This document shows, in pieces, positions 1 to 27,386 of a stretch of 64,000 nucleotides of DNA (the first letter of the stretch is position 1; each line of letters opens with the position of its first letter). The translations under genes were made by a program, and so were the position numbers. The stretch spans positions 1,178,001-1,242,000 of the forward strand of contig NC_088800.1 of assembly GCF_011386835.1 (NCBI RefSeq), given 5' to 3'. The DNA is from Chrysemys picta bellii. Its lineage: Eukaryota. The notes under the pieces were generated by a model that saw only the letters and a list, made by a program, of their open reading frames with translations, ran no database searches and was not told the DNA's origin.

Positions 1-441
1 CTGCGCCTACCCCAGGTACACAGCCAGCCTGTGCCGGGCTCTGTCCTGCCTGGCACCCTGGTGCCAGGGGGTGCGAGGAGAGTCCAGCTGGGGGCTTGTG
101 TGGGGAGCTGGGCTGCACGTCCCCATCGCCCGGCCAGGCTGGCCCCTGTGGGTGGGGCAGCAAACATCCAGGGGGCAGGGAGGGTAACAGAGCAGGCCCC
201 GCGGGGGGTCTTCGGGATGGACTGGCCACTCTGCTGGCTGGCAGGCAGGGCTCAGTCTGTGGGGTATTAGCAACAGGGGATGGGGGGGTCCATTGCCGGG
301 GAGGGTGGGAGGGGGCGGGCGGGGTCCATTGCCGGGGGGGTGGGGGTGGGAGGAGGCGGGGCCATTGGCAAGCAGGGAGGGTGCAGAGGGCACGTCTGGT
401 GCTGTGGCGGGAGGACGTGAGCTTTGCAATTGGCTGTTTAG

Positions 442-589
442 GGCTAAACACATCAGCATCACGCTGGCTCTGAATACCACCACCTACCTGGACAAGGAGC
501 GGGAGTACCTGCCCTGGAGCGCCGCCCTCGACAACCTGGGTTACTTCCGCCTGATGTTTGACCGCAGTGAGGTGTACGGCCCCATGCAG
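442..589 (+). CDS. ANPEP: Aminopeptidase N, internal coding exon (gene continues upstream of the window)
   Basis: tttag|G acceptor and CAG|gtgag donor; encodes (R)[49 protein letters not shown], matching the M1 aminopeptidase N C-terminal domain (human [18 protein letters not shown]). Confidence 0.95.
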
Positions 590-920
590 GTGAGCCCCCG
601 CCTGCCCCAGGCCAGGTGGATTGCGGGCAGCATGGCTGGATGGCGCTCGGATGGCCACTCTGCCGTTCCCGCCTGTGCGGGGTCAGTTCAGCCGTGGGCC
701 TGGCACAAACGCAGGGCATAGGGTGGGCTCTGCAAATCGCCCCAGCGAGGCGGAGAGGCGGGCCCCAGAGGGTCGGAGCTGCCCGGGGAAGGGCATGGGG
801 TGGGGGGAAGGAGGCGGCAGGAGCCGGGGGTGCGCTGGGTGATCGTGGCGTGACGGGGGGAAGGCTCAGAGCTCCTGATCCTTCTGGCAAGTGGTGCTCA
901 CCCTGCCCATCTTCCCCCAG

Positions 921-1012
921 AAATACATCCGGAATCAGGTGACCCCCTTGTTCCAGTACTTTGGAAACATCACCTCCAACTGGACCAGGCTCCCGGACGG
1001 CTTGATGGAGCA
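921..1012 (+). CDS. ANPEP: Aminopeptidase N coding exon
   Basis: cccag|AAA acceptor, CA|gtgagt donor; KYIRNQVTPLFQYFGNITSNWTRLPDGLMEQ; phase fits both neighbours. Confidence 0.93.
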
Positions 1013-1687
1013 GTGAGTCCCAGCGCGGCACGTCCTCCGGCCAGCCACAGGGCAGGCCCTGCTCACCCGGCGCCCCTGGGGCCTGGAGAACTGGCTCCTC
1101 CCGTGACTGCTGCTGCCTCTTTTCCAAGGGGAGGGCTCTGGGCCCCCCTTTCCTGCCCCACCCCTCAGCCAAGGGGGGTACTGGGCATGGCTCCCAGAGT
1201 GCGGGCACGCTGGGGCCGGTTGGGTGGCCCTGTGTTACGGGCATATGCCACTCTGTGCCCAGTCCCAGGCACCCTCCAGACCCTGCCTCTCCTCTCGCTC
1301 TTCCTCTGCTCCAGCGGACCCCGAGAGGCCGGGCGTTCCCCTCCCCACTGGCGGGATGGCTGAGCTGGGCAGTGGCACCCGCTGGCAGGAGGCAGAAGGA
1401 GCTGCCACGCGGTGCCCGGTGGGAACTGCCCAGGGTGCACCTAGGCAGCACTGTCCCCGGTAGTGCCCACTGCTCGCAGCCTCAGAGCGAGGTGACCCCC
1501 ACCCAACCTGTACGGCGCCTGGCAGATGGGGCAGTGGGAGAGACTCCTCCTGGGCCCGGCTGGTGACGGGCCGGTGGGCGCCTGCCTCTGTCACGGTCAT
1601 TCTGCCTGGTCTCCCTGCCCGCCAGGCCTGGCTCCTAGGGCCCCTTCGCCGGGTCCAGCCGTTGACACGGCTCCTCTCCCCACTCAG

Positions 1688-1798
1688 GTACAACGAGATC
1701 AACGCCATCAGCACGGCCTGTTCCCAAGGTGTCCCTGAGTGCGCGCAGCTGGCGGCCGCCTTCTTCAACCAGTGGAAGCAAAACCCCAGCAACAACCC
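1688..1798 (+). CDS. ANPEP: Aminopeptidase N coding exon
   Basis: ctcag|G acceptor, CC|gtgagc donor; [37 protein letters not shown]. Confidence 0.95.
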
Positions 1799-1889
1799 GT
1801 GAGCCCTTCCCCGTGGCCTCTGGGCAGGGAGGAGGTGGCTGGGGGGATGGGCCGGGCTGGGCCATGGCGCTGTTCTGGGCTGGGGGGCA

Positions 1890-2216
1890 GGGCTGGACGG
1901 GCCTTGGTTCCCCCCTGGGTTGGGGCGCTGGGCTGGACCGGGTCGTGGCGCCCCCCTGGGATGGGGGGCAGGGCTGGACCGGGCCGTGGCGCCCCCCTGG
2001 GTTGGGGGACTGGGCTGGACCGGGTCGTGGCGCCCCCCTGGGTTGGGGGGCTGGGCTGGACCGGGTCGTGGCGCCCCCCTGGGTTGGGGGACTGGGCTGG
2101 ACCGGGTCGTGGCGCCCCCCTGGGATGGGGGGCAGGGCTGGACCAGGCCTTGGTTCCCCCCTGGGTTGGGGGGCTGGGCTGGACCGGGTCGTGGCGCCCC
2201 CCTGGGATGGGGGGCT
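1890..2216. repeat. 41-bp G-rich minisatellite (8 copies) in an ANPEP intron
   Basis: Unit gggctggaccgggtcgtggcgcccccctgggttgggggrct recurs at 1890, 1930, 1971, 2012, 2053, 2094, 2135, 2176. Confidence 0.92.
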
Positions 2217-2484
2217 GGGGCAGGCCCAAGGGGGAGTGCAGGCAGAATTTGCCTATTTCCAGCTGGTAAATACCCAGCTCCCTGGCGCTGCCTGGACCCT
2301 AGTGAGATGCTAGCCCTACGCATGGGCCCGCTCTCTCCGGGTGGGGGGTGCCCCCCCAGCACTCCTCCATGGGAGCCTCTCCCCATGGTCTGCTGTGCCA
2401 GGGCTCTGCTGAGTGGGGCCCGGTGCCTGAGTGCCGAGCGCGTTCCCCGGCACGGCCCCCGTGACAGGCATGTTCCCCCCCCAG

Positions 2485-2652
2485 GATCCCCCCGAACCTG
2501 CGCTCCTCCATCTACTGCAGCGCCATAGAGACGGGCAGCGAGGCAGACTGGGAGTTCCTCTGGCAGATGTTTAAAAACGCCACGGTGGTGGCCGAAGCCG
2601 ACAAGCTCCGCTCGGCCCTGGCCTGCAGCAAGGAGCCTTGGATCTTGAAAAG
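2485..2652 (+). CDS. ANPEP: Aminopeptidase N coding exon
   Basis: cccag|G acceptor, AG|gtgtgt donor; IPPNLRSSIYCSAIETGSEADWEFLWQMFKNATVVAEADKLRSALACSKEPWILKR; absent from the ORF track. Confidence 0.95.
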
Positions 2653-2835
2653 GTGTGTGGGGGACACAGCCGCCTTCGGGGAATGGGGGCCGTGGAGCCC
2701 ATCGGCGTAGGGATGGGGAGGATCCAGGCTGCCATGGGCACGGGGAAGGAGAAGGGTCTGGGGCTGCCTGCAGCGGTAGGTGGCCCTGCGCCTGCCACGG
2801 GTGCCGCGTACCAGCCCTGCCTGCCCCCTCCCCAG

Positions 2836-2976
2836 GTATCTGCAGTACTGCCTGGATCCCAGCAAAATCCGGAAGCAGGACGCCACCTCCACCATCAACA
2901 GCATCGCCAGTAACGTGGTGGGGCAGAGCCTGGCCTGGGACTTCATCCGGGGCAACTGGAAGACCCTTTTCAGCCA
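2836..2976 (+). CDS. ANPEP: Aminopeptidase N coding exon
   Basis: cccag|G acceptor, CA|gtgagt donor; [47 protein letters not shown]. Confidence 0.95.
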
Positions 2977-3335
2977 GTGAGTGCCACGGAGGGGCAGCCC
3001 GTGGGAGGGGGCTGGGGAATGCAGGGGAGCGATGGGGAGTGGAGGAGCGATGGGGAATGGGGGGAGCAATGGGGAGCCTGGGGGAGGGGGAGGAGCAAGA
3101 GGGGATGGGGAATGGGGGGGGGGGCGCTCTCAGTCTCTCTCCCCACACGTTATGTGCCCTTCGTGCCATCCTGGGCTCCTGTGGCTGCCTGGCGAAGAGC
3201 AGGGGGTGCTCCCTGCTCCTATGCCCGGGGCAGCCCCTCTGCTGAGCCTTGGTAGCTCTTTCCGGGATGCTGCCCCTTTGGGAGGAAGGCACCTCCCCCA
3301 TGCCCGCCTGCTCACCCCGCCCCTCCCCTCCACAG

Positions 3336-3417
3336 GTACGGCGGGGGCTCCTTCTCCTTCTCGGGCCTGATCCAGGTGGTGACGCAGCGGTTTGCCTCTG
3401 AGTTCGAGCTGCAGCAG
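3336..3417 (+). CDS. ANPEP: Aminopeptidase N coding exon
   Basis: cacag|G acceptor, CAG|gtgagg donor; YGGGSFSFSGLIQVVTQRFASEFELQQ. Confidence 0.95.
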
Positions 3418-4139
3418 GTGAGGCCCGTCCCAGGCCTATCCGTGCGCGGGGTGGTGGGGCCCCTCGGGAAGGGAGAGCCCCGTCCGGTCTGCTCTAGCCC
3501 TCCCCAGGGCCCGGCCGTCGCTCCCTGCAGCCTCTCCCCAGGGCCTGGCCCAGGTGGGCTGGGAGCCACCCGAGTGCAGGGGCTGGCACCATTTCGCGTG
3601 GGGTCGTCGGCGCTTCACAGCCCCAATCCGTTAGTGCAGCTCTGTCGCCCTTGCCCGGCCACCCTGCAGCAGAGGGATCCTGCCTCCCTGCCGGGCGGGC
3701 GAGTCCGTCAAGCCCCGTCACTTGGGGGCGAGCCAGGGCAGGTCTAGGGAGAGGTCCAGCTGTGATGCCAGCCCCAGGGATGGCAGCGCCCCGCTACCTC
3801 CAGACACACATAGCCTCTGCCCCATTTGTGGGGCCGCAGCCGAGGAACTGGTGCTGCAGGAAACCTCGCGTGTTACCGAAGCACCCCAAGGCTGCATGCC
3901 TGTCCCTTGGGGTTCACATCCTGGCCTCCCTCCCTGCGTGGCCGAGCAGCGCACAGACAGCTGCTTTCCTGCTCCTCCTGGGTCCATCCCTCTGGGCCTG
4001 CAGGTGTCTGGGGCTGCTTGGCGCCCTCCCCAGGTTTGGGGTGCCCGGGTGGTGCCAGGGCTGCATGAGGGCACCGCAGTGCACCGGCGCTGTCCTGCGG
4101 CCGCCCTCACTCCCTCTCGGGCCCGCTCTCTCTCGGCAG

Positions 4140-4292
4140 CTGGAGCAGTTCAAGGCAGACAACGCCGACGTGGGCTTTGGCTCGGGCACGCGGGCGCTGG
4201 AGCAGGCGCTGGAGAAGACCAAAGCTAATATCAAATGGGTGGCAGAGAACAAGCAGACGGTGCTGACGTGGTTTGAGACGGCAAGCAGCTGA
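4140..4292 (+). CDS. ANPEP: Aminopeptidase N terminal coding exon
   Basis: ggcag|CTG acceptor; [50 protein letters not shown] then TGA. Confidence 0.96.
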
Positions 4293-6625: not shown

Positions 6626-7161
6626 CCTGTTCACCTGACTGCACGGTTCTGGAGTCACTTAGACAGCAGCACAATTTCCTTGCCAGGAATGTGACACCTC
6701 CATCTCTGTGTCCCCCCAGTGACCCCCGGCCCCAGGAGTCCCCTTGACTGCCCTCTCCCTGTGACCCCCATGACCCACTGTGATTCGCCTGGCCCCATTG
6801 CCTCGTGACCCCCATCCTTGTGACCCCCATGACAACCCCACCCCACCCTCATGATTCCCCTGTCCCCGTGAGTCCCTGCCCATCTCCCTGAACACCCAGG
6901 TCCTCTGGCTACGTCTGGGGAGCAGGCCTGGAGCTGGGCTAAGGCCAAGACAGAGGCGCGCTGGGCTGCCGTTGCTGTTCTCCAGGCTGCAAAGGGGCTC
7001 GTGGGGCGAAATGGGTCCAGGGTGACTTCGTGCTCTGTGCAGTTGCCTCCAAGAAGTACCATGGGCAGGGGCTGCCCACGTGTGAAGCGCGCTTGCCTCA
7101 GTTCTGGCCTACATCCATGGCTCATTCTCCAGGCCACTGCCCAAGGGATGGTGAGACTTGT

Positions 7162-8175
7162 CAGCCCCACACAGCACCGGGCCCTGCCCAGCACCGCGCT
7201 GGGTCCCCCATCCCCACACAGACCCAGGCCCTGCCCAGCACCGCGCTGGGTTCCCCCCCCCAGCCCCACACAGCACCGGGCCCTGCCCAGCACTGCGCTG
7301 GGTCCCCCCGCTCCCAGCCCCACACAGACCCAGGCCCTGCCCAGCACCGCGCTGGGTTCCCCCCCCCAGCCCCACACAGCACCGGGCCCTGCCCAGCACC
7401 GCGCTGGGTCCCCCCGCTCCCAGCCCCACACAGACCCAGGCCCTGCCCAGCACCGCGCTGGGTTCCCCCCCCCCCAGCCCCACACAGCACCGGGCCCTGC
7501 CCAGCACTGCGCTGGGTCCCCCCGCTCCCAGCCCCACACAGACCCAGGCCCTGCCCAGCACCGCGCTGGGTTCCCCCCCCCAGCCCCACACAGCACCGGG
7601 CCCTGCCCAGCACCGCGCTGGGTCCCCCCGCTCCCAGCCCCACACAGACCCAGGCCCTGCCCAGCACCGCGCTGGGTCCCCCATCCCCATCCCCACACAG
7701 ACCCAGGCCCTGCCCAGCACCGTGCTGGGTCCCCCCCTCAGCCCCACACAGCACCGGGCCCTGCCCAGCACCGCGCTGGGTCCCCCAGCCGCACACAGAC
7801 CCAGGCCCTGCCCAGCACCGCGCTGGGTTCCCCCCTCAGCCCCACACAGCACCGGGCCCTGCCCAGCACTGCGCTGGGTCCCCCCCCTCAGCCCCACACA
7901 GCACTGGGCCCTGCCCAGCACCGCGCTGGGTCCCCCCCCTCAGCCCCACACAGCACTGGGCCCTGCCCAGCACCGCGCTGGGTCCCCCCCCAGCCCCACA
8001 CAGACCCAGGCCCTGCCCAGCATCGCGCTGGGTCCCCCCGCCCCCAACCCCACACAGACCCAGGCCCTGGCCAGCACCACGCTGGGTCCTGCCCCCAGCC
8101 CCACACAGACCCAGGCCCTGCCCAGCACCGCGCTGCCCCCCCCCCCCCCAGCCCCACACAGACCCAGGCCCTGCT
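7162..8175. repeat. ~51-bp minisatellite (~20 copies) with two alternating variants
   Basis: Unit cagccccacacag[caccgg/acccag]gccctgcccagcaccgcgctgggtcccccc; explains the overlapping Pro/Gly-rich ORFs at 7001-8295. Confidence 0.92.
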
Positions 8176-8429
8176 CCCAGACAGCATATGAAGGGACTGG
8201 GTAATTCCCATGCAGGCAGCCCAGCCCTGCCCACACAGCCGGGTAGGGAGCTGACAGCGCCAGTGGGGGAGCTCCCCGTCCTGGCAGGGGACTAATGAAA
8301 TCTAGGACTGCTGAAGAAATGTAACGCGAGTGTGAGTCAGATCAGAGCATGGGAGGAGCAGGGACCCTGGTCATGCGGCTCCGTGCCCATCACCGTTCAC
8401 CCACCCTGCCTTCAGAAACTGTGTCCGCC

Positions 8430-9049: not shown

Positions 9050-9241
9050 CTAGTCCGTGAAGAGCCCCGTATCTCTGCACCCAAACGCGGCCGATGTCCT
9101 GCTTCTCATCACCTCTTCCGTGCCAGCTGCCCCCCATTCCTGCTGCTGGGCCGGCTCTGCCGGGACGCCCCTGTGGTGGCTGCAGGCTGGCTGGGGGCTG
9201 GGGTCAATGGACCAGTCCAGGGCTGGAGACATGGGCCCTGC
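9050..9241 (-). CDS. MESP2: Mesoderm posterior bHLH factor 2, exon 2
   Basis: cttttcttttggcacaag|GCA acceptor in phase 0; AGPMSPALDWSIDP...GLFTD then TAG; junction LAAFYQ|AGPMSP parallels human MESP2 LAAVYQ|GLSVSP. Confidence 0.7.
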   Translation of the reverse strand, partial: AGPMSPALDWSIDPSPQPACSHHRGVPAEPAQQQEWGAAGTEEVMRSRTSAAFGCRDTGLFTD

Positions 9242-10072
9242 CTTGTGCCAAAAGAAAAGCCGTGTTTGACAAGGTGCCAGGCGGGCTGGCCGGGGTGAGG
9301 CGCACTGCAGGCCCCGCCAGACTCCACCGGCCCCAGTTCTCAGGCACCCCCTTGCCCAGGGCGCCGCAGGGACAGATCCTGTGTGCCTCAGCTGCATTCT
9401 GAGGGAGCATTTCCCCCTCCCCGCTAGGCTCCGCATTGCCCCAGGCTGAGGGGCCCCGTTGCACAGCCCCTCGGAGGGGTGTGCGGGGCACTGAACATTA
9501 TACTAATGGGCAGTTCCCCTGGCCAGGCCTGGGAAGATCCTGGTGCCCCCACATTGCTGAGGGATCGCCCACATCCTTCCCTGGGCTCCCAGTGCAGAAC
9601 CCGCCTCACCCCGGGCAGGGCACAGCTCCAGGTGCCCTGGTAGCACCTGGCTGTCACGGCAGACCCTTGGGGCTCCATGCCCAGCGGCACGGGTGGTTCA
9701 GCCCTGGCACTGAACACCAAGGGGGGGTGCTTTCTGCCTGGCCACCCTGCCAGCGTTGCTTGGGCAGAGCGGCCTAGGGGACCCCAGGGGGCAGAGAGAG
9801 GCACATTAAAGGGAGGCTCCTGGTTTCCAAGCTGCTGCTCCTGGAGGAGTCCGAGGCACCAGCCCAGATCTCTCTGGCATGGCATTCCAATCGGAACCGT
9901 CCCGCCAGGGCCCAGTGCCCCGGGCAGAGCCCACTGGCTGCAAGCAGGCACTATGGTCCACCGGCTTGGATCCCCTAGGGGAATCTGACCCGGTGTGGAT
10001 GCTGCCGGCCTCCTGCCGGGGCCTCTGTAGCGTATGGGGCAGGGAAGGGGCCCCCCAGAGTGCAGTGCGTAC

Positions 10073-11083
10073 CTGGTAGAAAGCAGCCAGCAGGGGGCAG
10101 TGCGTGGGTGATGTCCAGTGCCTTGCGTCCGTGGCTCCGATCCCATTGGGCTCCGGGGGGGCTGCCGGGTCAGTGCAGGATCCCCAGGACGCTGTGCCAT
10201 GGGGCTCTGGAGGGCTCCCTGCCTTGGGGCGGGAGGTGGGTGAGCCCCAGGCCATTATGTCTGAGATCTGGGCCCCACGGAGCTCCAGGGGAGTCCCTGT
10301 TTCAGAGCAGGAGGTGGGTGACACCCAGGATGCTGCTCCAGTACTTTGAGTCCAAACCAGCTCGGGGGGTGTCCCTGGGGCAGGGCAGTAAGGGGGCGAA
10401 AGCCAAGAGGCTGTGTCTGTGCCGAGTGCCCTGTGCGGCTCGGGGGGTGTCCCTGCGGCAGGGCAGCAGGTGGACGACATCCAGGACTCTGCGGCCGGGG
10501 GGGACCCCTCCCACGGGGCTGGAGATGCTGCCTGGAGGCCAGGGGTCCTGGCCTGGCAGCAACCCAGCCCCTCGGGGCAGAGGGGGCAGTGCCGGCGTGG
10601 GCCCCCTCTCCTCTGGGCCAGCGTCTCCTCGTTGAGCCCCAGCAACTCCGACAGGTGGGAGATGTAGCGGATGGCGAGGCGCAGGGTCTCGATCTTGGTC
10701 AGGCTCTGGCCGGCCGGTGCCACCGAGGGGGGCAGGTAGCGTCGCAGGGTGTGGAGAGCCTTGGACAGGTTCCTCATGCGCAGCTTCTCCCGCTCGCTGG
10801 CGCTCTGCCTCTGCCCGCCGCCTGCCCTGCACTGTGCCCTCTGGCTGCTGTGGCAGGGATCTGCCCGGTGCTTGGGGGGCAGAGCGGGTGCTTGCCCCGG
10901 GAGGCAGCCGTGGAGGGGCTCCCGGGAAGCCAGGAGTGCAGAAGAAGGGGACAGGCTATAGGAGTCTGAGGAGGAGGTGGGAGAGGTGGAGTCTGAGTGG
11001 GCCCAGCCCCACTCCTGCAGCAGGGCCTGGCTTGGGAGTAGCTGGAGGTCCTGGGCTAGGAGCTGGGCAGGACAGCTGGCCAT
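10073..11083 (-). CDS. MESP2: Mesoderm posterior bHLH factor 2, exon 1
   Basis: ATG at 11083; Mesp b[57 protein letters not shown] plus CPLCP; ends LAAFYQ|gtacgc; tail-to-tail with ANPEP as in human. Confidence 0.93.
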
Positions 11084-11141
11084 GGTGTCAGGGCTTGGGG
11101 CTTCTCAGGCTGCGTGTGGGGAGAGCGCAGCAGCCCTGGGC

Positions 11142-11316
11142 TTTATGCTGAGGCTGGAGGTGTGAAGTGGCACCTTCCCAGGTTGCATGGAGGTGTCAAA
11201 ACCCACAGAGGCCTGGCTGGGGCTGAGGCAGGAGGCCCCTGGGAAAGCCAGCCCCATTTGCAGAGGTGTCAGTTCTGACTCCTCTGCCCTTTAATTGGGG
11301 CTGCCTGAGCTGGGAA
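11142..11316 (-). promoter_or_regulatory. MESP2 proximal promoter / presomitic enhancer: TATA-like box, three T-box sites, RBPJ-like sites
   Basis: CATAAA (11142-11147), AGGTGTGAagtggCACCT (11158-11175), AGGTGTCA (11191-11198 and 11264-11271), TGGGAA cores (11175-11180, 11240-11245, 11311-11316); fits known Tbx6 plus Notch control of Mesp2. Confidence 0.7.
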
Positions 11317-11619
11317 GTGTGCAGGGGCCAATTCACATGGCAGTGAGAGCTGCTAATTTTCTTACCATCCCTCCTTGAGTCAACCAGCTCAATCCCACAA
11401 TGCCCCGGGCTGGGCCAGCGGGAGCTCCTCAGTGCGCAGGCTACGCTGGGACCTTGACCTTCCCCAGGAGAGAGACCCCGAGTGTTTTGCCATTGCTAAT
11501 GCTGGGTGTGCTAACCTCCTGCTAGAGTGCAGTGCTCAGAGGGCAAGGCTGGGCTGGCGGTGAACGCCCAGGATGCCTGGGTCCCATTCCCAGCTCCATC
11601 AGACGCACATTGCTGGAGT

Positions 11620-11890
11620 AGGCAGACTGGGAGATTTAAGGCCAGAAGGGACAGGTGTGGTCACCTGTCTGCGTGACACAGGCCGGAGACGTCCCTGAGT
11701 AATTCCTGGCTAAATGGAGGGGGTCGGTTACATTAAATTCAATGATGAGAATCCACCATGCCCCTTGTAAGTTGTTCCAGTGGTTAGTTACCTGTCCTGG
11801 GAAACACCCACACTGAATTTCCAGGCTGAATTTGTCAAGTTTCAGCTGCCAGACGTTAAATCGTGTTAGACCTTCCTCTGCTAAATTAAA
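11620..11890 (-). mobile_element. Old CR1 LINE fragment
   Basis: Minus strand encodes degenerate CR1 RT C-terminus FNLAEEGLTRFNVWQLKLDKFSLEI...VTNHWNNL. Confidence 0.7.
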
Positions 11891-11969
11891 GTGCAACAAG
11901 CACTGGAACGTGGGGTCTGGGGGGGCACCTGGCCCAGCTTTCCCAGCCCCAAACCCAGGGTCCACATGA

Positions 11970-12295
11970 CTTCTGGCCTGGCCTCCCCTACCCCCACAGA
12001 ACCCGGGGTCCGCGTGGCTCCTGGCCTGGCCTCCCCTACCCCCCCAGAACCCGGGGTCCGCGTGGCTCCTGGCCTGGCCTCCCCTACCCCCCCCCCCAGA
12101 GCCCGGGGTCCGCGTGGCTCCTGGCCTCCCCTACCCCCCCAGAACCCGGGGTCCGCATGGCTCCTGGCCTGGCCTCCCCTACTCCCCCAGAACCCGGGGT
12201 CCGCATGGCTCCTGGCCTGGCCTCCCCTACCCCCCAGAACCCGGGGTCCGCGTGGCTCCCGGCCTGGCCTCCCCTACCCCCAGAACCCGGGGTCT
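11970..12295. repeat. ~47-50-bp minisatellite (~7 copies)
   Basis: Unit cagaacccggggtccgcgtggctcctggcctggcctcccctaccccc. Confidence 0.9.
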
Positions 12296-12741
12296 GCGCC
12301 TGGTCTCAATCCCAACCCAGTAGCCCAGGCCCTGCTTTCCCTATTCTCCCTTCCCCCAGTGCTGCTGCTCAGCGGTGGTGGATCCAGGGGGACCCGGGCC
12401 CTGGTGTCACGGGGTAGCTCATACTTCAGCTCAGCCCTACCGCCCCTGGCAGTGCAGGCTGGGGTCAGGGGCCCTCGGGCCTAGTTCTCCCACTGGGGCA
12501 GCCCCTGCCTGTCTAGGGGAGGTTCCGGGGGCTCACACTCATGCTGCCCTGGGGCGTCTCCGCTCGGTGTCTCGGGTGGTTCCTGCGTGAGCCGGGCCAG
12601 GCTGCTGCCCGCGTGGGTGGACTGGCTTGTGTCTCCCTGTGAGTGCAGAGCAGGGTGAGCAGGGCCTGGCCGCTCTCGCGTTGCTGATTCGCACACCGCA
12701 CTCAGCTGTTTGCACAAGTGCCACCTCGCCCGGCCCGCGGG

Positions 12742-14320: not shown

Positions 14321-15858
14321 CTGCTCCTGAGCGGCCCAGAATGGTGCAGGCCCCGAGGGACCCAAAGGAATAGGCAGGCATCAGTTCCTGATCATGCCGC
14401 TGGGAAGGGGAGGCTCCCGTGTGCATGAGCCTGGGGCAGTACGGGGTGGGAGGGAGCCCCAGCCGTCAGCACTGTGCAGAGCGCTCCCCTGGAGAGGGGC
14501 AGGGGCTAGCGCTGGCCGTCCATGCAGGGGGAGATAAACCTACCCAGGAGTGCAGGGAGCGGGGGGCGAGGAATGGGGCAGGGGAGCCCTCAGTGGCCCC
14601 TCGCCAGCCCCTCTTGGGCACACGCTGCGTTTGCTGGGAGGTGTCGCTGCACGCAGCCCCCTGCAGCGCTGGGCTCGGGCTGGGCGCATAGTGAGGAGCT
14701 CCCCAGGGAGCTCCCAGCTTGGGGAAGAGGGACGAATAATTGATTCCATATGGTGCTGCAGGCCTGGGGGCTCGGCAAGCTTCCTCCTAAGGCGGGGGGG
14801 CAGAAGCCATAGGACTGGGGTTGCAGCTGAGGCCAGGGGCCGAGCCCTGGCAGCGCGCAGGACGGCGGGGAGAGGTGAGGGCTCAGCGCTCCTGGTGACT
14901 GTGTTTGCCAGTGGGGGGCGACTGGACAGACGACCGAGCGCAGATACCCCAGAGTTTCCGGGAGGTTTCCGGCGCTGGCGAGGGGCATCCCAGGACTCCC
15001 CAGGAGTGAGGGGCCAGGGCCTCCATTCCCTGCCCTGCCCTGCCCTGTCGAAATGGCTCCGAAGTGCAGATCGCCGGCAGGTGTGCAGGGCCCACAGCGG
15101 GCAGGGTGCCTCCCGCACTCCCTGTCTGCCCAGCTCCCTGCCGCCCTTCTAAATACCGCCCCCCCCCCGCAGGGTCCCCATAGCGTGGACGGGATGGACC
15201 CTGGAGCCAGCATCACACCCCTGCAGGGGCCCCCCTCCATTGCAGGGGGTGGGGGGCTCTGACCTTTCACCTCCGGCTGGGAGAGCTCGGGCAGACCCTG
15301 GCAGGGAGAAACACCAGCACTTGTCAAAACCCGGGAGGGGGGGGAGAAAAGCCCCCCCCCCCCCCCCAGCTCCCTGCCCATGGAGTCACCAGCCAGGGCA
15401 TCCACTAAGGGGCTACGGGTGGTGGGACGGGGACAGAGAAGGGGGCAAGTGGAAATGAGAGAGGGGAACAGGCAGGAGACCCTGAGCACTGGGGCTGGGA
15501 CAGGGAATGAGACAGGTTTCCTGGCCTGGCCTCCCCTCAGTCCCAGAACCTGTATTAGTGTGTGTGTGTGTGTGTGTGTGTGTAGTGCAGGGCGGGGCTA
15601 TGTACATGCCTGTAGTAGTGTGAGGTCCATGGACATGCCTGTATTAGTGCAAAGGGGGGCACTGTCCATGCCTGTACTTGTGCAGGGGCGTGCGTGTCTG
15701 TTACATGCCTGTATTCGTGTGGGGGTTGTGCATTCCAGTATTAGTGGCTGGGGTGCATGTACACGCTGTATTGTGCGGGGTTGCGTGTGTGTGTACACAT
15801 CTGTGTCAAAAAGAACAGGAGTACTTGTGGCACCTGAGAGACTAACAAATTTATTAGA

Positions 15859-15898
15859 GCATAAGCTTTCGTGGACTACAGCCCACTTCTTCGGAGGC
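15859..15898 (-). ncRNA. Slightly degenerate hammerhead ribozyme motif (left arm of the palindrome)
   Basis: Minus strand gcctCCGAAGAAgtgggctgtagtccacGAAAgcttatgc; one stem I mismatch and one G-U pair in stem II. Confidence 0.55.
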
Positions 15899-16156
15899 AT
15901 ATAGAGTGGAACATATATTGAGGCGATATATATACACACATACAGAGAGCATGAACAGGTGGGAGTTGTCTTACCAACTCTGAGAGGCCAATTAAGTAAG
16001 AGAAAAAAAACTTTTGAAGTGATAATCAAGATAGCCCAGTACAGGGCTTCAAAAGTTTTTTTTCTCTTACTTAATTGTTGGTAAGACAACTCCCACCTGT
16101 TTATGCTCTCTGTATGTGTGTATATATATCTCCTCAATATTTATTCCACTCTATAT

Positions 16157-16196
16157 GCATCCGAAGAAGTGGGCTGTAGCCCACGAAAGCTTATGC
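16157..16196 (+). ncRNA. Minimal type I hammerhead ribozyme motif (Penelope-type)
   Basis: Stem I gcat/atgc; core CCGAAGA plus extra A; stem II GTGGG/CCCAC; GAAA; palindromic AGCT stem III; NUH = CUU. Confidence 0.7.
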
Positions 16197-16877
16197 TCTA
16201 ATAAATTTGTTAGTCTCTAAGGTGCCACAAGTACTCCTGTTCTTTTTGCGGATACAGACTAACACGGCTGCTACTCTGACATCTGTGTCAGTGCGGCGGG
16301 TGCCTGTGCACACACCTGCACTAGTGCAGGGTGTGTGTGTGTCTGTGTACACACCAGTACCAGTGTGGGGGCCCTGTATTTTGGAAGCACGTCTCACGCC
16401 ACATTCCCTTGAGAGCCTCTCCCCCTTCTGTTTTCTTTTCCAGAATTGCAGCACTGGGTTTCCCTGGTAACCTTTACACCAGCCGTGTCAAGTGCCAGCT
16501 GCATTGGGCCTGGGAACGCAGCCCGGGGGTCCCTCCCAGCTCTTCACACCCTCCCCCCCCCGCCCCGTAGTGAGAACGTGCTGGCTCCAGGGGGACGGGG
16601 TGTGTGTGGAGGGGGCTGTGGTTCCACCCGTGACACTGCCTTGGGTCTGGACTTCTCATTATGAGCGAGGGGCCCAAACTGGTTGGGGAAATCCTGGTGT
16701 AGCCCAGCCTGAGAACGCCCCAGCAGGGGTGTCCAGCCCCCCACCCAGGCTGGGGTTTGTCCTATGGTAACTCTGGGGGGCCCCAGTCAGGGACCAGGGC
16801 TCCACTGTGCCAGGTGCTGACAGACACCCTAAGGGAGACACAGCCCCCACCCTGAGAAGCTTACAATCTAGCGCCAT

Positions 16878-18659: not shown

Positions 18660-18761
18660 TTCAAAGGAGCTCTCTCCCCCAGGCCCTCCAGCCCCCCAGG
18701 GCTTTGATGTGCTGATGGTCCCTGCGAAGGTGCCACTTCACACCTCCGGCCTCAGCATAAA
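18660..18761 (+). promoter_or_regulatory. MESP1 proximal promoter: two TCF/LEF sites, T-box palindrome, TATA-like box
   Basis: TTCAAAG (18660-18666), CTTTGAT (18702-18708), AGGTGccactTCACACCT (18728-18745), CATAAA (18756-18761). Confidence 0.65.
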
Positions 18762-18812
18762 GCCCGGGGCTGCGACGCTCTCCCCACACGCAGCCTGGGA
18801 AGCCCTGACGCC

Positions 18813-19637
18813 ATGGCCAGCTCTCCTGCCCAGCTCCTAGCCCCGGATCTCCTGCTGCCCCCAGGCCAGGCCCTGCTGCAGGAGTGGGGCAGGGCCCAGC
18901 CCAGCACGGAGGGGTACAGCAGCTGCTCCCCAACGCCCTCCACCGACTCCTGCGGCCTCTCGCCCCTCTACCCCCTCTGCCCAGCTCCCCAGGAGCCCTG
19001 CAGCAGCTGCCCTGCAGCCCCGAGCCTGGTGCTGACGCCAAGACGCAGGGCTGGCCTGTGCCCAGCCTACGGGAGCAGGAAGGGCAGCCGGGGAAGGGCA
19101 GGCGGCGGGCAGAGGCAGAGCGCCAGCGAGCGGGAGAAGCTGCGCATGAGGAACCTGTCCAAGGCTCTCCACACCCTGCGACGCTACCTGCCCCCCTCGG
19201 TGGCACCGGCCGGCCAGAGCCTGACCAAGATCGAGACCCTGCGCCTCGCCATCCGCTACATCTCCCACCTGTCGGAGCTGCTGGGGCTCAGCGAGGAGAC
19301 GCTGGCCCAGAGGAGAGGGGGCCCACGCCGGCACTGCCCCCTCTGCCCCGAGGGGCTGGGTTGCTGCCAGGCCAGGACCCCTGGCCTCCAGGCAGCATCT
19401 CCAGCCCCGTGGGAGGGGTCCCCCCCGGCCGCAGAGTCCTGGGTGTCGTCCACCTGCTGCCCTGCCGCAGGGACACCCCCCGAGCCGCACAGGGCACTCA
19501 GCACAGACACAGCCTCTTGGCTTTCGCCCCCTTACTGCCCTGCCCCAGGGGACCCCGAGCCGCACAGGGCACGAATCCTGGATGCGGGGCCGATGCTGCT
19601 GCCAGCTGAGTTTGCAGACATGGGTCTGTCCTCCCAG
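18813..19637 (+). CDS. MESP1: Mesoderm posterior bHLH factor 1, exon 1
   Basis: ATG at 18813; full Mesp bHLH plus CPLCP; ends DMGLSSQ|gtatgt in phase 0; head-to-head with MESP2 as in human. Confidence 0.92.
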
Positions 19638-20131
19638 GTATGTTCACTCTCTGCCCCCTCCTCAGCCTAGGCTGTGTCCTGAGTTACCTGCCAGAGTAAC
19701 CCCCCGTGGTGCGAATTCAGTACCCCCCAAATTCCTGGCCGCTTGTAATGGCCCGTGGGCCGGGTCCTGCGAGGAGGGCAGCATGCACTGCCGGGGGGAA
19801 GGGTTTTCCAGGGTGGATGCTGAGGCATGGAGAGCTGGGAGTGACGTGCTCAGGGCTACTCGGCCGATCAGCACAGCAGAGCCCGGAGGGGCTCTGACCA
19901 CAGACACCCCCCTTCCCTGGCCCTTGTGGGAGTCAGCGTCAGCTGAGAGGGCAGCGCGAATGACTCAGTGCCCTCGCTCCAGGGGCTCGCTGGCCCTGCT
20001 CCTGTCTGTGCCCTCCAGGGGCAGTTTGTGGGTCCTACTCAGAGGGCCCCCACTCCGTCCGGCTCCTGGAGTCAGTGCCCAGGGAGTCTGGCCTTGTGTT
20101 GCTCCACTGATCCCTGTGCTCCTCTCTGCAG

Positions 20132-25427: not shown

Positions 25428-25961
25428 ATGAACGTCAGCCAGGGAGCGGGCATGGTACCCTGCAGCAGCCTCCTGCCCTCCGAGGGCGGCTGTGGGTGGG
25501 GCCCCTGGCCCAACGGGAGCGAGGGGGCCCTGCAGCTGCCCACCTTCTCCCCCGCCGCCAAGGCCCGCGTCATCCTCACCTTCGTGCTGCTCACCCTCTC
25601 GGCCGCTGGCAACCTGGCGGTGCTGTGGGCGGGCGCGGGCGGGCGGCGTGGGAAGCTCTCGCACGTCCGCGTGCTCCTGCTGCACCTGGCGGCGGCCGAC
25701 CTCCTGGTCACTTTCGTGGTGATGCCGCTGGACGCCGTCTGGAACATCACAGTGCAGTGGCGGGCAGGGGACCTGGCCTGCCGCCTCCTCATGTACCTCA
25801 AGCTGCTGGCCATGTACGCCTCGGCTTTCATCACCGTGGTGATCAGCCTGGACCGCCAGGCTGCCATCCTGCGCCCGCTGGCCATCGCCCAGGCCCACAG
25901 GAGGAACCGGCTCATGCTGTATGCGGCCTGGCTACTGAGTGCTGGGCTCTCCGTGCCCCAG
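25428..25961 (+). CDS. GNRHR2: GnRH receptor, non-mammalian tail-bearing type (chicken type III-like; naming varies), coding exon 1
   Basis: MNVSQ...LPTFSPAAKARV...SHVRVLLLHLAAADLLVTFVVMPLDAVWNITVQW...ISLDRQAAIL...LSVPQ|gtaccc (TM1-TM4). Confidence 0.92.
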
Positions 25962-26748
25962 GTACCCGCCGGTCCCCACCCCCCAGATACCCACTGCCCC
26001 TCCCGCCCCAGGTACCCGCTGGTCTCCACCCCCCAGATACCCGCTGCCCCTCCCGCCCCAGATACCCACTGTCCCTCCCCACCGCAGGTACCGCCCCGTT
26101 CTCCCCCCCACAGGTATCCGTCCCACAGCCCCTGCTGTCCCAGCCCTGGGCTCCCGCCCCGGTTCTGCCGAAGCCCCCTGAGCGGAGCAGAGACTGCTGG
26201 GCCAGTTAGCAATGGGTGGGGATCATGTGCTGTTAGCTCTGTGCAGAACGGGGGCCGCTGAGCCCCCCCAACTCATCTCACATGGAGGGGGCTCCTCACA
26301 CTGCACTGCTCCTCGCCCCACTGGCTGAAGGGGGCTCCCAGGAGCCTGCTGGGGCTGTGAGTCGGGCAGCAGCAGTGTGAGCTGGGGGGTGGGGTGTGAG
26401 GGGGGAGAGGTGGTGTGCGGGGGGCTGTCTGGGGGGGCTCCCTCATGAAAAAGCCATTCCTGGCAGCTCAGGTGGGCAGGGCGGACGCCCCCATCTCCCT
26501 GCGGCTCAGCTCACCCCACAGGGCGTGGGGGGGCTGGAACAGCCTCTTGTCCCCCGATGCCCAGGTCCCCAGCAGGCTAGCTTGGCCCACAAACGTCTGT
26601 GGTTCCAAGCGCTGGCCCTCCCCCGGGTGCTGGAGGGGTTGGGGGGCTGGCAGAGCCCGCTTCCTGTCTCGCTCGTGGCCCGGCTGGGTCGGGCGCGGGC
26701 CCATGCCGGGGTCCAGCTCCCCTCTCTCTCGCTCTGCTTTGCTTCCAG

Positions 26749-26953
26749 CTGTTCCTGTTCCACACAGTCACCATCCGCTCCCCGCAGACCTTCACCCAGT
26801 GCACCACGTGGGGCAGCTTCCCCCGGCGCTGGCACGAGACGGCCTACAACATGCTGGGCTTCGCCTGCCTCTTCCTCCTGCCGCTGCTCATCATGGTCTC
26901 CTGCTACTCCCGCATCCTGCTGGAGATCTCCCGGCGCATGGGCACCGGCCTCT
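26749..26953 (+). CDS. GNRHR2: GnRH receptor coding exon 2
   Basis: ttccag|CTG acceptor, T|gtgagt donor; 205 bp; LFLFHTV...FTQCTTWGSF...YNMLGFACLFLLPLLIMVSCYSRI (ECL2-TM5). Confidence 0.93.
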
Positions 26954-27386
26954 GTGAGTGGGCTGGCGCTAGCTGCAGGAGGCTGTGAGGTGGGCCTAGG
27001 GACACATGGGGCTGTGGAGAAGCTGGGGAGACCTGGGGGGTCCTGAGGCAGCTCTGGCTCATGCCGAGGGTTGGACCGGTCCCGAGTTCCAGACTCAGGC
27101 CCAAGGTCCCTGCCCCGAGGCTCGTCTGTGGGGCCCGGTTTCCCAGAGAGCCGGCTGCCCCGTGTGGGGCAGTGAAGTGAGCCTGGCCCTGGGGCTCACA
27201 GCTGGGCCCTCGTGGCCGGGGCTCCCTGCAGACGGCCGGTCCTCTCGGGAGATGCCACCGGCTAGCACGCTGAGTGGTGTGGGGCCGCGGGGGGCGGGGC
27301 CCTGGGCTTTGCCAGCTCCCCCCATGGCTAACGTGGCGTGTGGGGGCTGCGCCCCGCCCTGACAGCCCTGCTCCCTGTTGCTCTAG

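Follow-up and report, generated by a model that had tools for sequence, protein, structure and literature searches.

Probable recurrent gene conversion of a bHLH core between the head-to-head MESP1 and MESP2 genes of turtles

Interlocus gene conversion between close paralogs is well known from primate gamma-globin, the red and green opsins, HSP70 pairs and the arms of Y-chromosome palindromes. Here we describe what is very probably a further case, in MESP1 and MESP2, two bHLH genes that lie head to head in a stretch of 64,000 nucleotides (nt) from Chrysemys picta bellii (contig NC_088800.1, positions 1,178,001 to 1,242,000; the whole of this stretch is referred to below as the window). Like the textbook pairs, the two copies are close to each other and have a bounded, near-identical tract, trees that conflict between that tract and its surroundings, homogenised synonymous sites, and signs that the exchange was recurrent and bidirectional. 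Unlike the textbook pairs, they are two key developmental transcription factors whose duplication appears to predate the amniotes, and the conversion is limited to the DNA-binding and dimerisation domain and a low-complexity stretch; the promoter-distal sequence, the N-terminal linker and the C-termini are paralog-specific, and the 5' edge of the tract is common to turtles and a bird.

Both genes are heavily studied regulators, MESP1 of cardiac and early mesoderm and MESP2 of the somite boundary, and across vertebrates the bHLH is a notoriously poor guide to which MESP gene is orthologous to which. The closest described locus is that of the mouse, where Mesp1 and Mesp2 also lie head to head, share enhancers and compensate genetically for each other, and where a Mesp1 knock-in rescues the loss of Mesp2 (PMC8791502). 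The genes, the layout and the interchangeability of the proteins are thus the same; that study is one of regulation, and the word 'conversion' occurs 0 times in its text. In a survey of chicken bHLH genes, Mesp1 and Mesp2 were not monophyletic with the human genes, a result left unexplained there (PMC2862960). We found no report of gene conversion or concerted evolution between Mesp1 and Mesp2 in a literature search that left subscription journals mostly uncovered.

A near-identical tract in two otherwise distinct genes

The two genes are MESP2 on the minus strand (gene A) and MESP1 on the plus strand (gene B), and their first exons contain the following pair of segments:

10373..10828 (-): tract of probable conversion, MESP2 copy (exon 1: basic region, HLH and ~93 downstream codons); 4 mismatches to the other copy; Pfam HLH
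19095..19550 (+): tract of probable conversion, MESP1 copy (exon 1, codons 95-246); end-branch length 0 in the core tree

In an ungapped base-by-base comparison, these segments pair without a gap over 456 nt with 4 mismatches. A reading of the DNA made from the sequence alone (the sequence-only reading) had described a tract of ~455 bp with only 4 mismatches, and this description holds: 10373-10827 (-) pairs with 19096-19550 (+) over 455 nt, and the matching base at 10828/19095 adds one. One mismatch is synonymous (T/C at 10645/19278, Leu/Leu) and the others replace a residue (A/G at 10632/19291, N/S; A/G at 10480/19443, M/V; G/A at 10423/19500, G/S), so that in-frame codon reading returns the same effects as the sequence-only reading had listed. 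The tract, which is pair I1 in our repeat finding, corresponds to codons 86-237 of MESP2 and 95-246 of MESP1. Pfam places one HLH domain in each gene (amino acids 91-144 in MESP2 and 100-153 in MESP1; E 2e-14), and the distance from the end of this domain to the end of the tract means that near-identity extends ~93 codons beyond the bHLH; the sequence-only reading was right about such an extension, and its figure of ~85 codons was too low. The abrupt end that it described is also seen: identity collapses to background on both flanks, continuing for ~8-14 nt more at the 3' end if a 3-nt gap is allowed.

Chance as the origin of the tract is excluded. When the match and mismatch columns of the alignment of the two exons 1 were shuffled with our own permutation script (a GENECONV-type test), the longest run with at most 4 mismatches was 124, compared with the observed 456, and 0 of 100,000 shuffles equalled the observation. 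The tract also forms, within coding sequence, an inverted repeat of ~450 nt with 99% identity.

Tract and linker compared across species

We compared the window with loci from Gopherus evgoodei (L001), Caretta (L002 for MESP2 and L005 for MESP1), Emydura (L003), Platysternon (L004), Carettochelys (L006), Alligator (L007), the loon Gavia (L008) and Gopherus flavomarginatus (L010). Every species with both genes has a near-identical tract in the two paralogs, with an identical 5' edge that falls just before the basic region:

Platysternon: ~470 nt, 2 mismatches
Caretta: ~385 nt, 1-2 mismatches
Emydura: ~395 nt, 4-5 mismatches
Gopherus flavomarginatus: ~397 nt, 5 mismatches
Gavia: ~460 nt, 2 mismatches

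On the 5' side of the tract, each gene of the window has a linker of its own:

10829..10997 (-): MESP2-specific N-terminal linker, unconverted; groups by ortholog in the linker tree
18899..19094 (+): MESP1-specific N-terminal linker, unconverted; linker tree, and match to marsupial and bird MESP1-like linkers

Over the core of 372 nt that all these species have in common, the paralogs of one species differ from each other at 1-6 positions, and sequences from different species differ at 6-30, whichever paralog is considered. The linker reverses this pattern, with paralogs ~43% different and orthologs only 2-15%; the linker of the window MESP2 differs from that of MESP1 at 75/172 aligned sites (with indels) and from that of Platysternon MESP2 at 4/172. 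The conflict is directly visible in the maximum-likelihood (ML) trees. That of the core pairs the paralogs by species, with support of 100/99 in Gavia, 98/98 in Emydura, 97/97 in Gopherus and 95/95 in Caretta, and a clade of turtle MESP2 sequences is rejected by the approximately unbiased (AU) test (delta log-likelihood (lnL) 159, p 8e-106). In the linker tree, the MESP2 sequences of turtles instead form a clade (86/95), as do their MESP1 sequences (96/97), and here the AU test rejects a clade of the window's MESP2 and MESP1 (delta lnL 162, p 1e-14). Separate trees for tract and flank, the check that the sequence-only reading had proposed, therefore sort the tract by species and the linker by ortholog, with the alternatives rejected in both cases.

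The DNA trees include the G. evgoodei MESP1, and Gopherus is represented by the G. flavomarginatus pair in the tract and derived-state counts. The G. evgoodei MESP1 (L001 1774-2528) contains several frameshifts in its assembly, which are either consensus errors in GC-rich sequence or the marks of a decaying gene; in G. flavomarginatus, MESP1 (L010 10001-10750) is intact.

Homogenisation is equally plain at synonymous sites, with 0-0.02 synonymous differences per site of the core between paralogs of a species and 0.02-0.17 between species (in this table, which also gives the ratio of non-synonymous to synonymous change (dN/dS), Gopherus is represented by G. evgoodei MESP2 alone, without a row for a Gopherus MESP1). 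Furthermore, the copies of a species have changed together. In the core of the cryptodires there are 12 derived states common to both paralogs of exactly one species (four in Gopherus, four in Caretta, three in Platysternon and one in the window), and a further 12 are found in a single copy only (private states); when Emydura is added, 29 derived states are common to both paralogs of one species, 16 of the 29 at third codon positions.

The same grouping is found more broadly in proteins. In a tree of the protein core (114 columns, covering the bHLH and ~60 residues downstream, from models collected by a word search with MESP2 exon 1), MESP1 and MESP2 are sisters in 17/17 species (13 birds, one marsupial and three turtles), and in five birds the two protein cores are identical. 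The N-terminal linkers and C-termini of these models are of clear MESP1 and MESP2 types. This tree was made without Calonectris, one of whose models lacks the bHLH motif, and without Aquila, where both models are MESP2-type.

Recurrent interlocus gene conversion between the inverted MESP1 and MESP2, homogenising the core, is very probably the cause of these patterns. The sequence-only reading had proposed recurrent, patchwise conversion between the head-to-head paralogs; the tree conflict is what that proposal predicts, and recurrence itself is shown by lineage-specific states in both copies (many of them synonymous), by a shifting 3' edge and by lineage-specific patches in a second, 5' block. 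The molecular route would be the repair of a broken copy with its partner, in the same chromosome or in the sister chromatid, as template. The segment converted, and homogenised repeatedly, would consist of the basic region, the HLH and ~90 downstream codons, its 5' edge lying in turtles and a bird alike where homology ends in the paralog-specific N-terminal linker, and its 3' edge shifting among lineages as whole 26-codon units are carried both ways. Selection may keep conversion out of the paralog-specific ends, and the identical DNA-binding and dimerisation surfaces that result may underlie the interchangeability of the two proteins.

Several points weigh against this explanation. Two of the species pairs have modest support in the core tree (75/75 for the window and 66/37 for Platysternon), because these lineages have accumulated few changes after their separation. 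The GC bias that conversion should leave is no more than suggested: in the core of the four cryptodire pairs (counted without Emydura, whose changes within the 29 states are mis-polarised for this use), the private derived states are strong-to-weak (G/C to A/T) without exception (12/12), compared with 7/12 of the shared ones, a further 3/12 being weak-to-strong and 2/12 neither (Fisher p 0.078 for shared versus private), so that GC-biased conversion is no more than hinted at, without significance. Collapse of the paralogs in the window's own assembly is excluded only indirectly. Finally, draft assemblies, in which collapse could inflate identity, are the source of many bird models, and we therefore take the 17-species result as supporting evidence and not as a formal test.

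An assembly artefact, in which reads of the paralogs were collapsed or cross-polished and the copies came to look falsely alike, is nevertheless very unlikely. The repeat is indeed hard to assemble, and a short-read draft of Chelonia mydas mis-joins or flips the locus at the tract. However, six further turtle assemblies, from five other species, and a seventh assembly, from a bird, have the same tract (several of these are chromosome-scale) with their own changes in both copies, and the copies of the window keep their four differences, three of which lie in the 372-nt core, can be polarised, and are all derived in MESP2. Moreover, when 31-mers were checked against Logan contigs (19 sequencing runs matched), 0.94-0.95 of those sampled from 9800-11400, an interval that includes both tract edges, were present in five runs from two studies.

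Less likely again is purifying selection alone, by which the bHLH and its surroundings would be too constrained to diverge. The bHLH is highly conserved in vertebrates, and conservation of the shared core promoter reaches alligator and loon, but synonymous sites are homogenised within species and divergent between species, and the low-complexity part of the tract varies freely between species, always in both copies. Constraint cannot be the cause of parallel, species-specific changes in both copies, of which the 12 shared states of the four cryptodire pairs (29 with Emydura) are examples. The least likely explanation is that the genes duplicated recently and independently in each lineage and their ends then diverged fast, a history that the tract tree taken alone resembles and that the lack of a one-to-one assignment of chicken Mesp1 and Mesp2 to the human genes (PMC2862960) might suggest, but which is contradicted by linkers, C-termini, 30 nt of sequence upstream of the core promoter and a gene order that are orthologous in turtles, birds and a marsupial.

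The Chelonia mydas draft of 2013 (L009) deserves a description of its own. In its segments 200-3000 and 9511-12311, promoter, N-terminal half and tract are those of MESP1 and continue without a break into the 3' half of MESP2, and on the other side the 5' half of MESP2 faces an N gap followed by 3' pieces of MESP1. This is the product expected from a crossover flip of the ~8-kb segment between the tracts, or equally a scaffolding error. In terms of inversion mediated by inverted repeats, the arms here are two stretches of ~450 nt with 99% identity, 8.2 kb apart, and a crossover between them would flip a segment with both promoters and both N-terminal halves. No inversion at the locus was found in the window or in seven other standard assemblies, the flipped arrangement being confined to the 2013 draft. 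As a bolder extension of recurrent conversion, one might imagine that the inverted tract occasionally resolves as a crossover, flipping the 8-kb promoter segment and swapping the 5' halves of the two genes.

The 3' edge and the 5' block

The 3' edge of the tract can be seen to differ among lineages, and it sits in weakly repeated units of 26 codons, one of which links the two genes of the window:

10378..10455 (-): MESP1-type repeat unit inside MESP2, 78 nt (26 codons); 1 mismatch to 19468-19545

Within MESP2, this 78-nt unit is found only in the window species and Platysternon, each with one copy; the MESP2 genes of Gopherus, Caretta and Emydura are without it. Within MESP1, most turtles have one copy, Caretta has three (L005 10650-10900) and Gopherus none. 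This distribution marks a conversion from MESP1 to MESP2 in an ancestor that the window species shared with Platysternon. The opposite direction may be represented in Gopherus, where MESP1 has lost the unit and has a MESP2-type junction, which points to a transfer from MESP2 to MESP1. The G/S difference at 10423/19500 falls within the unit. Tandem Repeats Finder reported nothing in the 3' region of either gene, and the 78-nt periodicity is visible only as blastn self-hits of 67%.

The divergence between the copies in the window is 0.9% over the tract, and that between the window and Platysternon is 1.6-2.4% in the tract and 5.1-5.8% in adjacent non-coding DNA. Very roughly, then, and with only four substitutions to count, the last homogenisation in the window lineage would have taken place at ~0.15-0.5 of the time since the split from Platysternon. 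One of the four differences has a distribution of its own: the derived Asn at 10632/19291 is present in the window MESP2 and in a Chrysemys MESP2 model (P0004), and also in MESP1 models of Chrysemys (P0010) and Trachemys (P0016), and the window MESP1 is without it at 19291. This suggests either a further, very recent conversion or polymorphism within emydids.

A second pair of similar segments lies at the 5' ends of the genes:

10998..11182 (-): 5' block, MESP2 copy, with T-box palindrome, TATA, 5' untranslated region (5'UTR) and first ~29 codons; repeats I3 and I4
18721..18898 (+): 5' block, MESP1 copy, with a 7-nt 5'UTR deletion common to all turtle MESP1 genes; repeats and alignments

The sequence-only reading had put the identity of this block, promoter plus first ~29 codons, at ~91-92%, in agreement with our repeat finding (I3, 99 nt at 91%; I4, 85 nt at 93%). 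Two accounts of this similarity have to be weighed. We lean towards an older conversion, which would have occurred later than the split between turtles and archosaurs, close to the origin of crown turtles or earlier, and would have been followed by local patches; constraint acting on a T-box/TATA promoter and an N-terminal motif that both genes share, with no older conversion at all, is the somewhat less probable but serious alternative. Conservation of the T-box palindrome and TATA in alligator and loon means that constraint does contribute to the similarity, and the MESP2 copies of turtles group together in the block tree (84/91), with the differences that distinguish MESP2 from MESP1, including the 7-nt 5'UTR indel, stable in all turtles.

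On the other hand, the window's MESP2 and MESP1 are 9% apart in the block, yet both turtle paralogs are equally distant, at 27-29%, from the alligator gene, and the 5'UTR part is not conserved in archosaurs. There is also a sharp switch in the 30 nt directly upstream, where paralogs differ by 52% and orthologs by 19-31% (19% between turtle and loon MESP2). Codons 14-19 of Caretta MESP1 are MESP2-like, and in Emydura several block states are common to both copies, as would be expected of lineage-specific patches. Paralog distances in the block are 5-9% in cryptodires and 15% in Emydura, much like the Emydura-cryptodire ortholog distances of 10-14%. These distances fit an older 5' block, and to that extent the proposal of the sequence-only reading that the tracts are of different ages is plausible; the block trees do not resolve the age, neither a single turtle clade (p 0.43) nor a MESP2 clade that includes the archosaurs (p 0.23) being rejected.

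Identity of the genes and meaning for the MESP family

The exons of the two genes in the window are as follows:

10073..11083 (-): MESP2 exon 1, 337 codons, ATG at 11083, GT donor at 10072; from translation
9050..9241 (-): MESP2 exon 2, 63 codons and stop, preceded by an AG acceptor; match to turtle MESP2 models P0001-P0003 and P0011
18813..19637 (+): MESP1 exon 1, 275 codons, ATG at 18813, GT donor at 19638; from translation and turtle MESP1-like models P0010, P0013 and P0014
20132..20185 (+): MESP1 exon 2, 17 codons and stop, with a MESP1-type C-terminal motif; from alignment to bird P0029 and marsupial P0120

The distance between the two ATGs is 7.7 kb, and the gene order is ANPEP, MESP2, MESP1 and a seven-transmembrane (7TM) receptor gene. 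Window positions 1-4292 are collinear with the ANPEP gene of Platysternon, and 25428-27031 (7tm_1) with the 7TM receptor gene that other turtles have after MESP1; the head-to-head layout with ANPEP beyond MESP2 recurs in 5 turtle loci and in Gavia. The therian order is MESP1-MESP2-ANPEP (bioRxiv 10.1101/2023.05.22.541847), with which that of the window agrees.

Gene models were compared exon by exon, unjoined. When exon 1 of gene A was used in a word search, the best matches were turtle proteins named 'mesoderm posterior protein 2' and 'mesoderm posterior protein 1-like', the closest homologs being those of Platysternon (95%, over the full length of the exon) and a Chrysemys model (93%); identity to the 'mesoderm posterior protein 2' of Gopherus and Caretta is 81%. 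Linkers and C-termini were compared by plain BLOSUM62 local alignment, BLASTP of the linkers against marsupial proteins being weakened by composition adjustment. The N-terminal linker of gene A matches a marsupial MESP2-like protein and a newt protein, and the linker and 17-residue exon 2 of gene B match bird and marsupial MESP1-like proteins, the exon 2 motif aligning to MESP1-like C-termini and not to MESP2-like ones. For exon 2 of gene A, local alignment detected no similarity to the marsupial MESP2-like C-terminus.

Together, the linkers, the MESP1 C-terminal motif and the synteny with ANPEP identify gene A as MESP2 and gene B as MESP1, and the same evidence supports an ancient duplication, before the mammal-sauropsid split. 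An old duplication had been argued in the sequence-only reading from distinct second exons matching mammalian MESP1 and MESP2 respectively; the age is borne out by ANPEP synteny, by linker matches to marsupial proteins and by the exon 2 motif of gene B, and the match of second exons applies to MESP1 and not to MESP2.

Other features of these loci may be recorded here. In Alligator (L007 1-13000), the interval from the 7TM receptor gene to ANPEP contains a single Mesp gene, which is MESP2-type; a tblastn search of the 10 kb upstream gave no MESP1-type copy. Some public models are misnamed or fused: the Platysternon MESP2 (P0001) is called 'solute carrier family 25 member 38', and in the Trachemys models P0016 and P0017 the first exon of MESP1 is fused with the 7TM receptor gene downstream of it. 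Midway between the genes of the window, at 15807-16248, there is an inverted repeat of 172 nt (I2) with 96% identity and a spacer of 98 nt. Downstream of MESP2, at ~7000-8300 (-), lies a long imperfect tandem array, all frames of which translate to repeated Gly/Ala/Val-rich units.

Since conversion between paralogs is already well known, the MESP genes offer a good new example of it but no new principle. Homogenisation of the core would explain why Mesp sequences cluster by species, and for annotation it means that MESP1 and MESP2 should be assigned by linker, C-terminus and synteny, and not by the bHLH; the locus should also be flagged as prone to assembly errors. We think it slightly favoured by the data that the MESP core has evolved in concert throughout the amniotes since their common ancestor, with a fixed 5' boundary and a moving 3' one. 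If so, this would explain both the unreadable orthology of Mesp genes in the bHLH and the interchangeability of the proteins that allows compensation. Conversion would thus give an evolutionary mechanism for the interchangeability and genetic compensation known in mouse, and the MESP genes would be a clean, very long-lived and domain-restricted case of it in two central developmental regulators.

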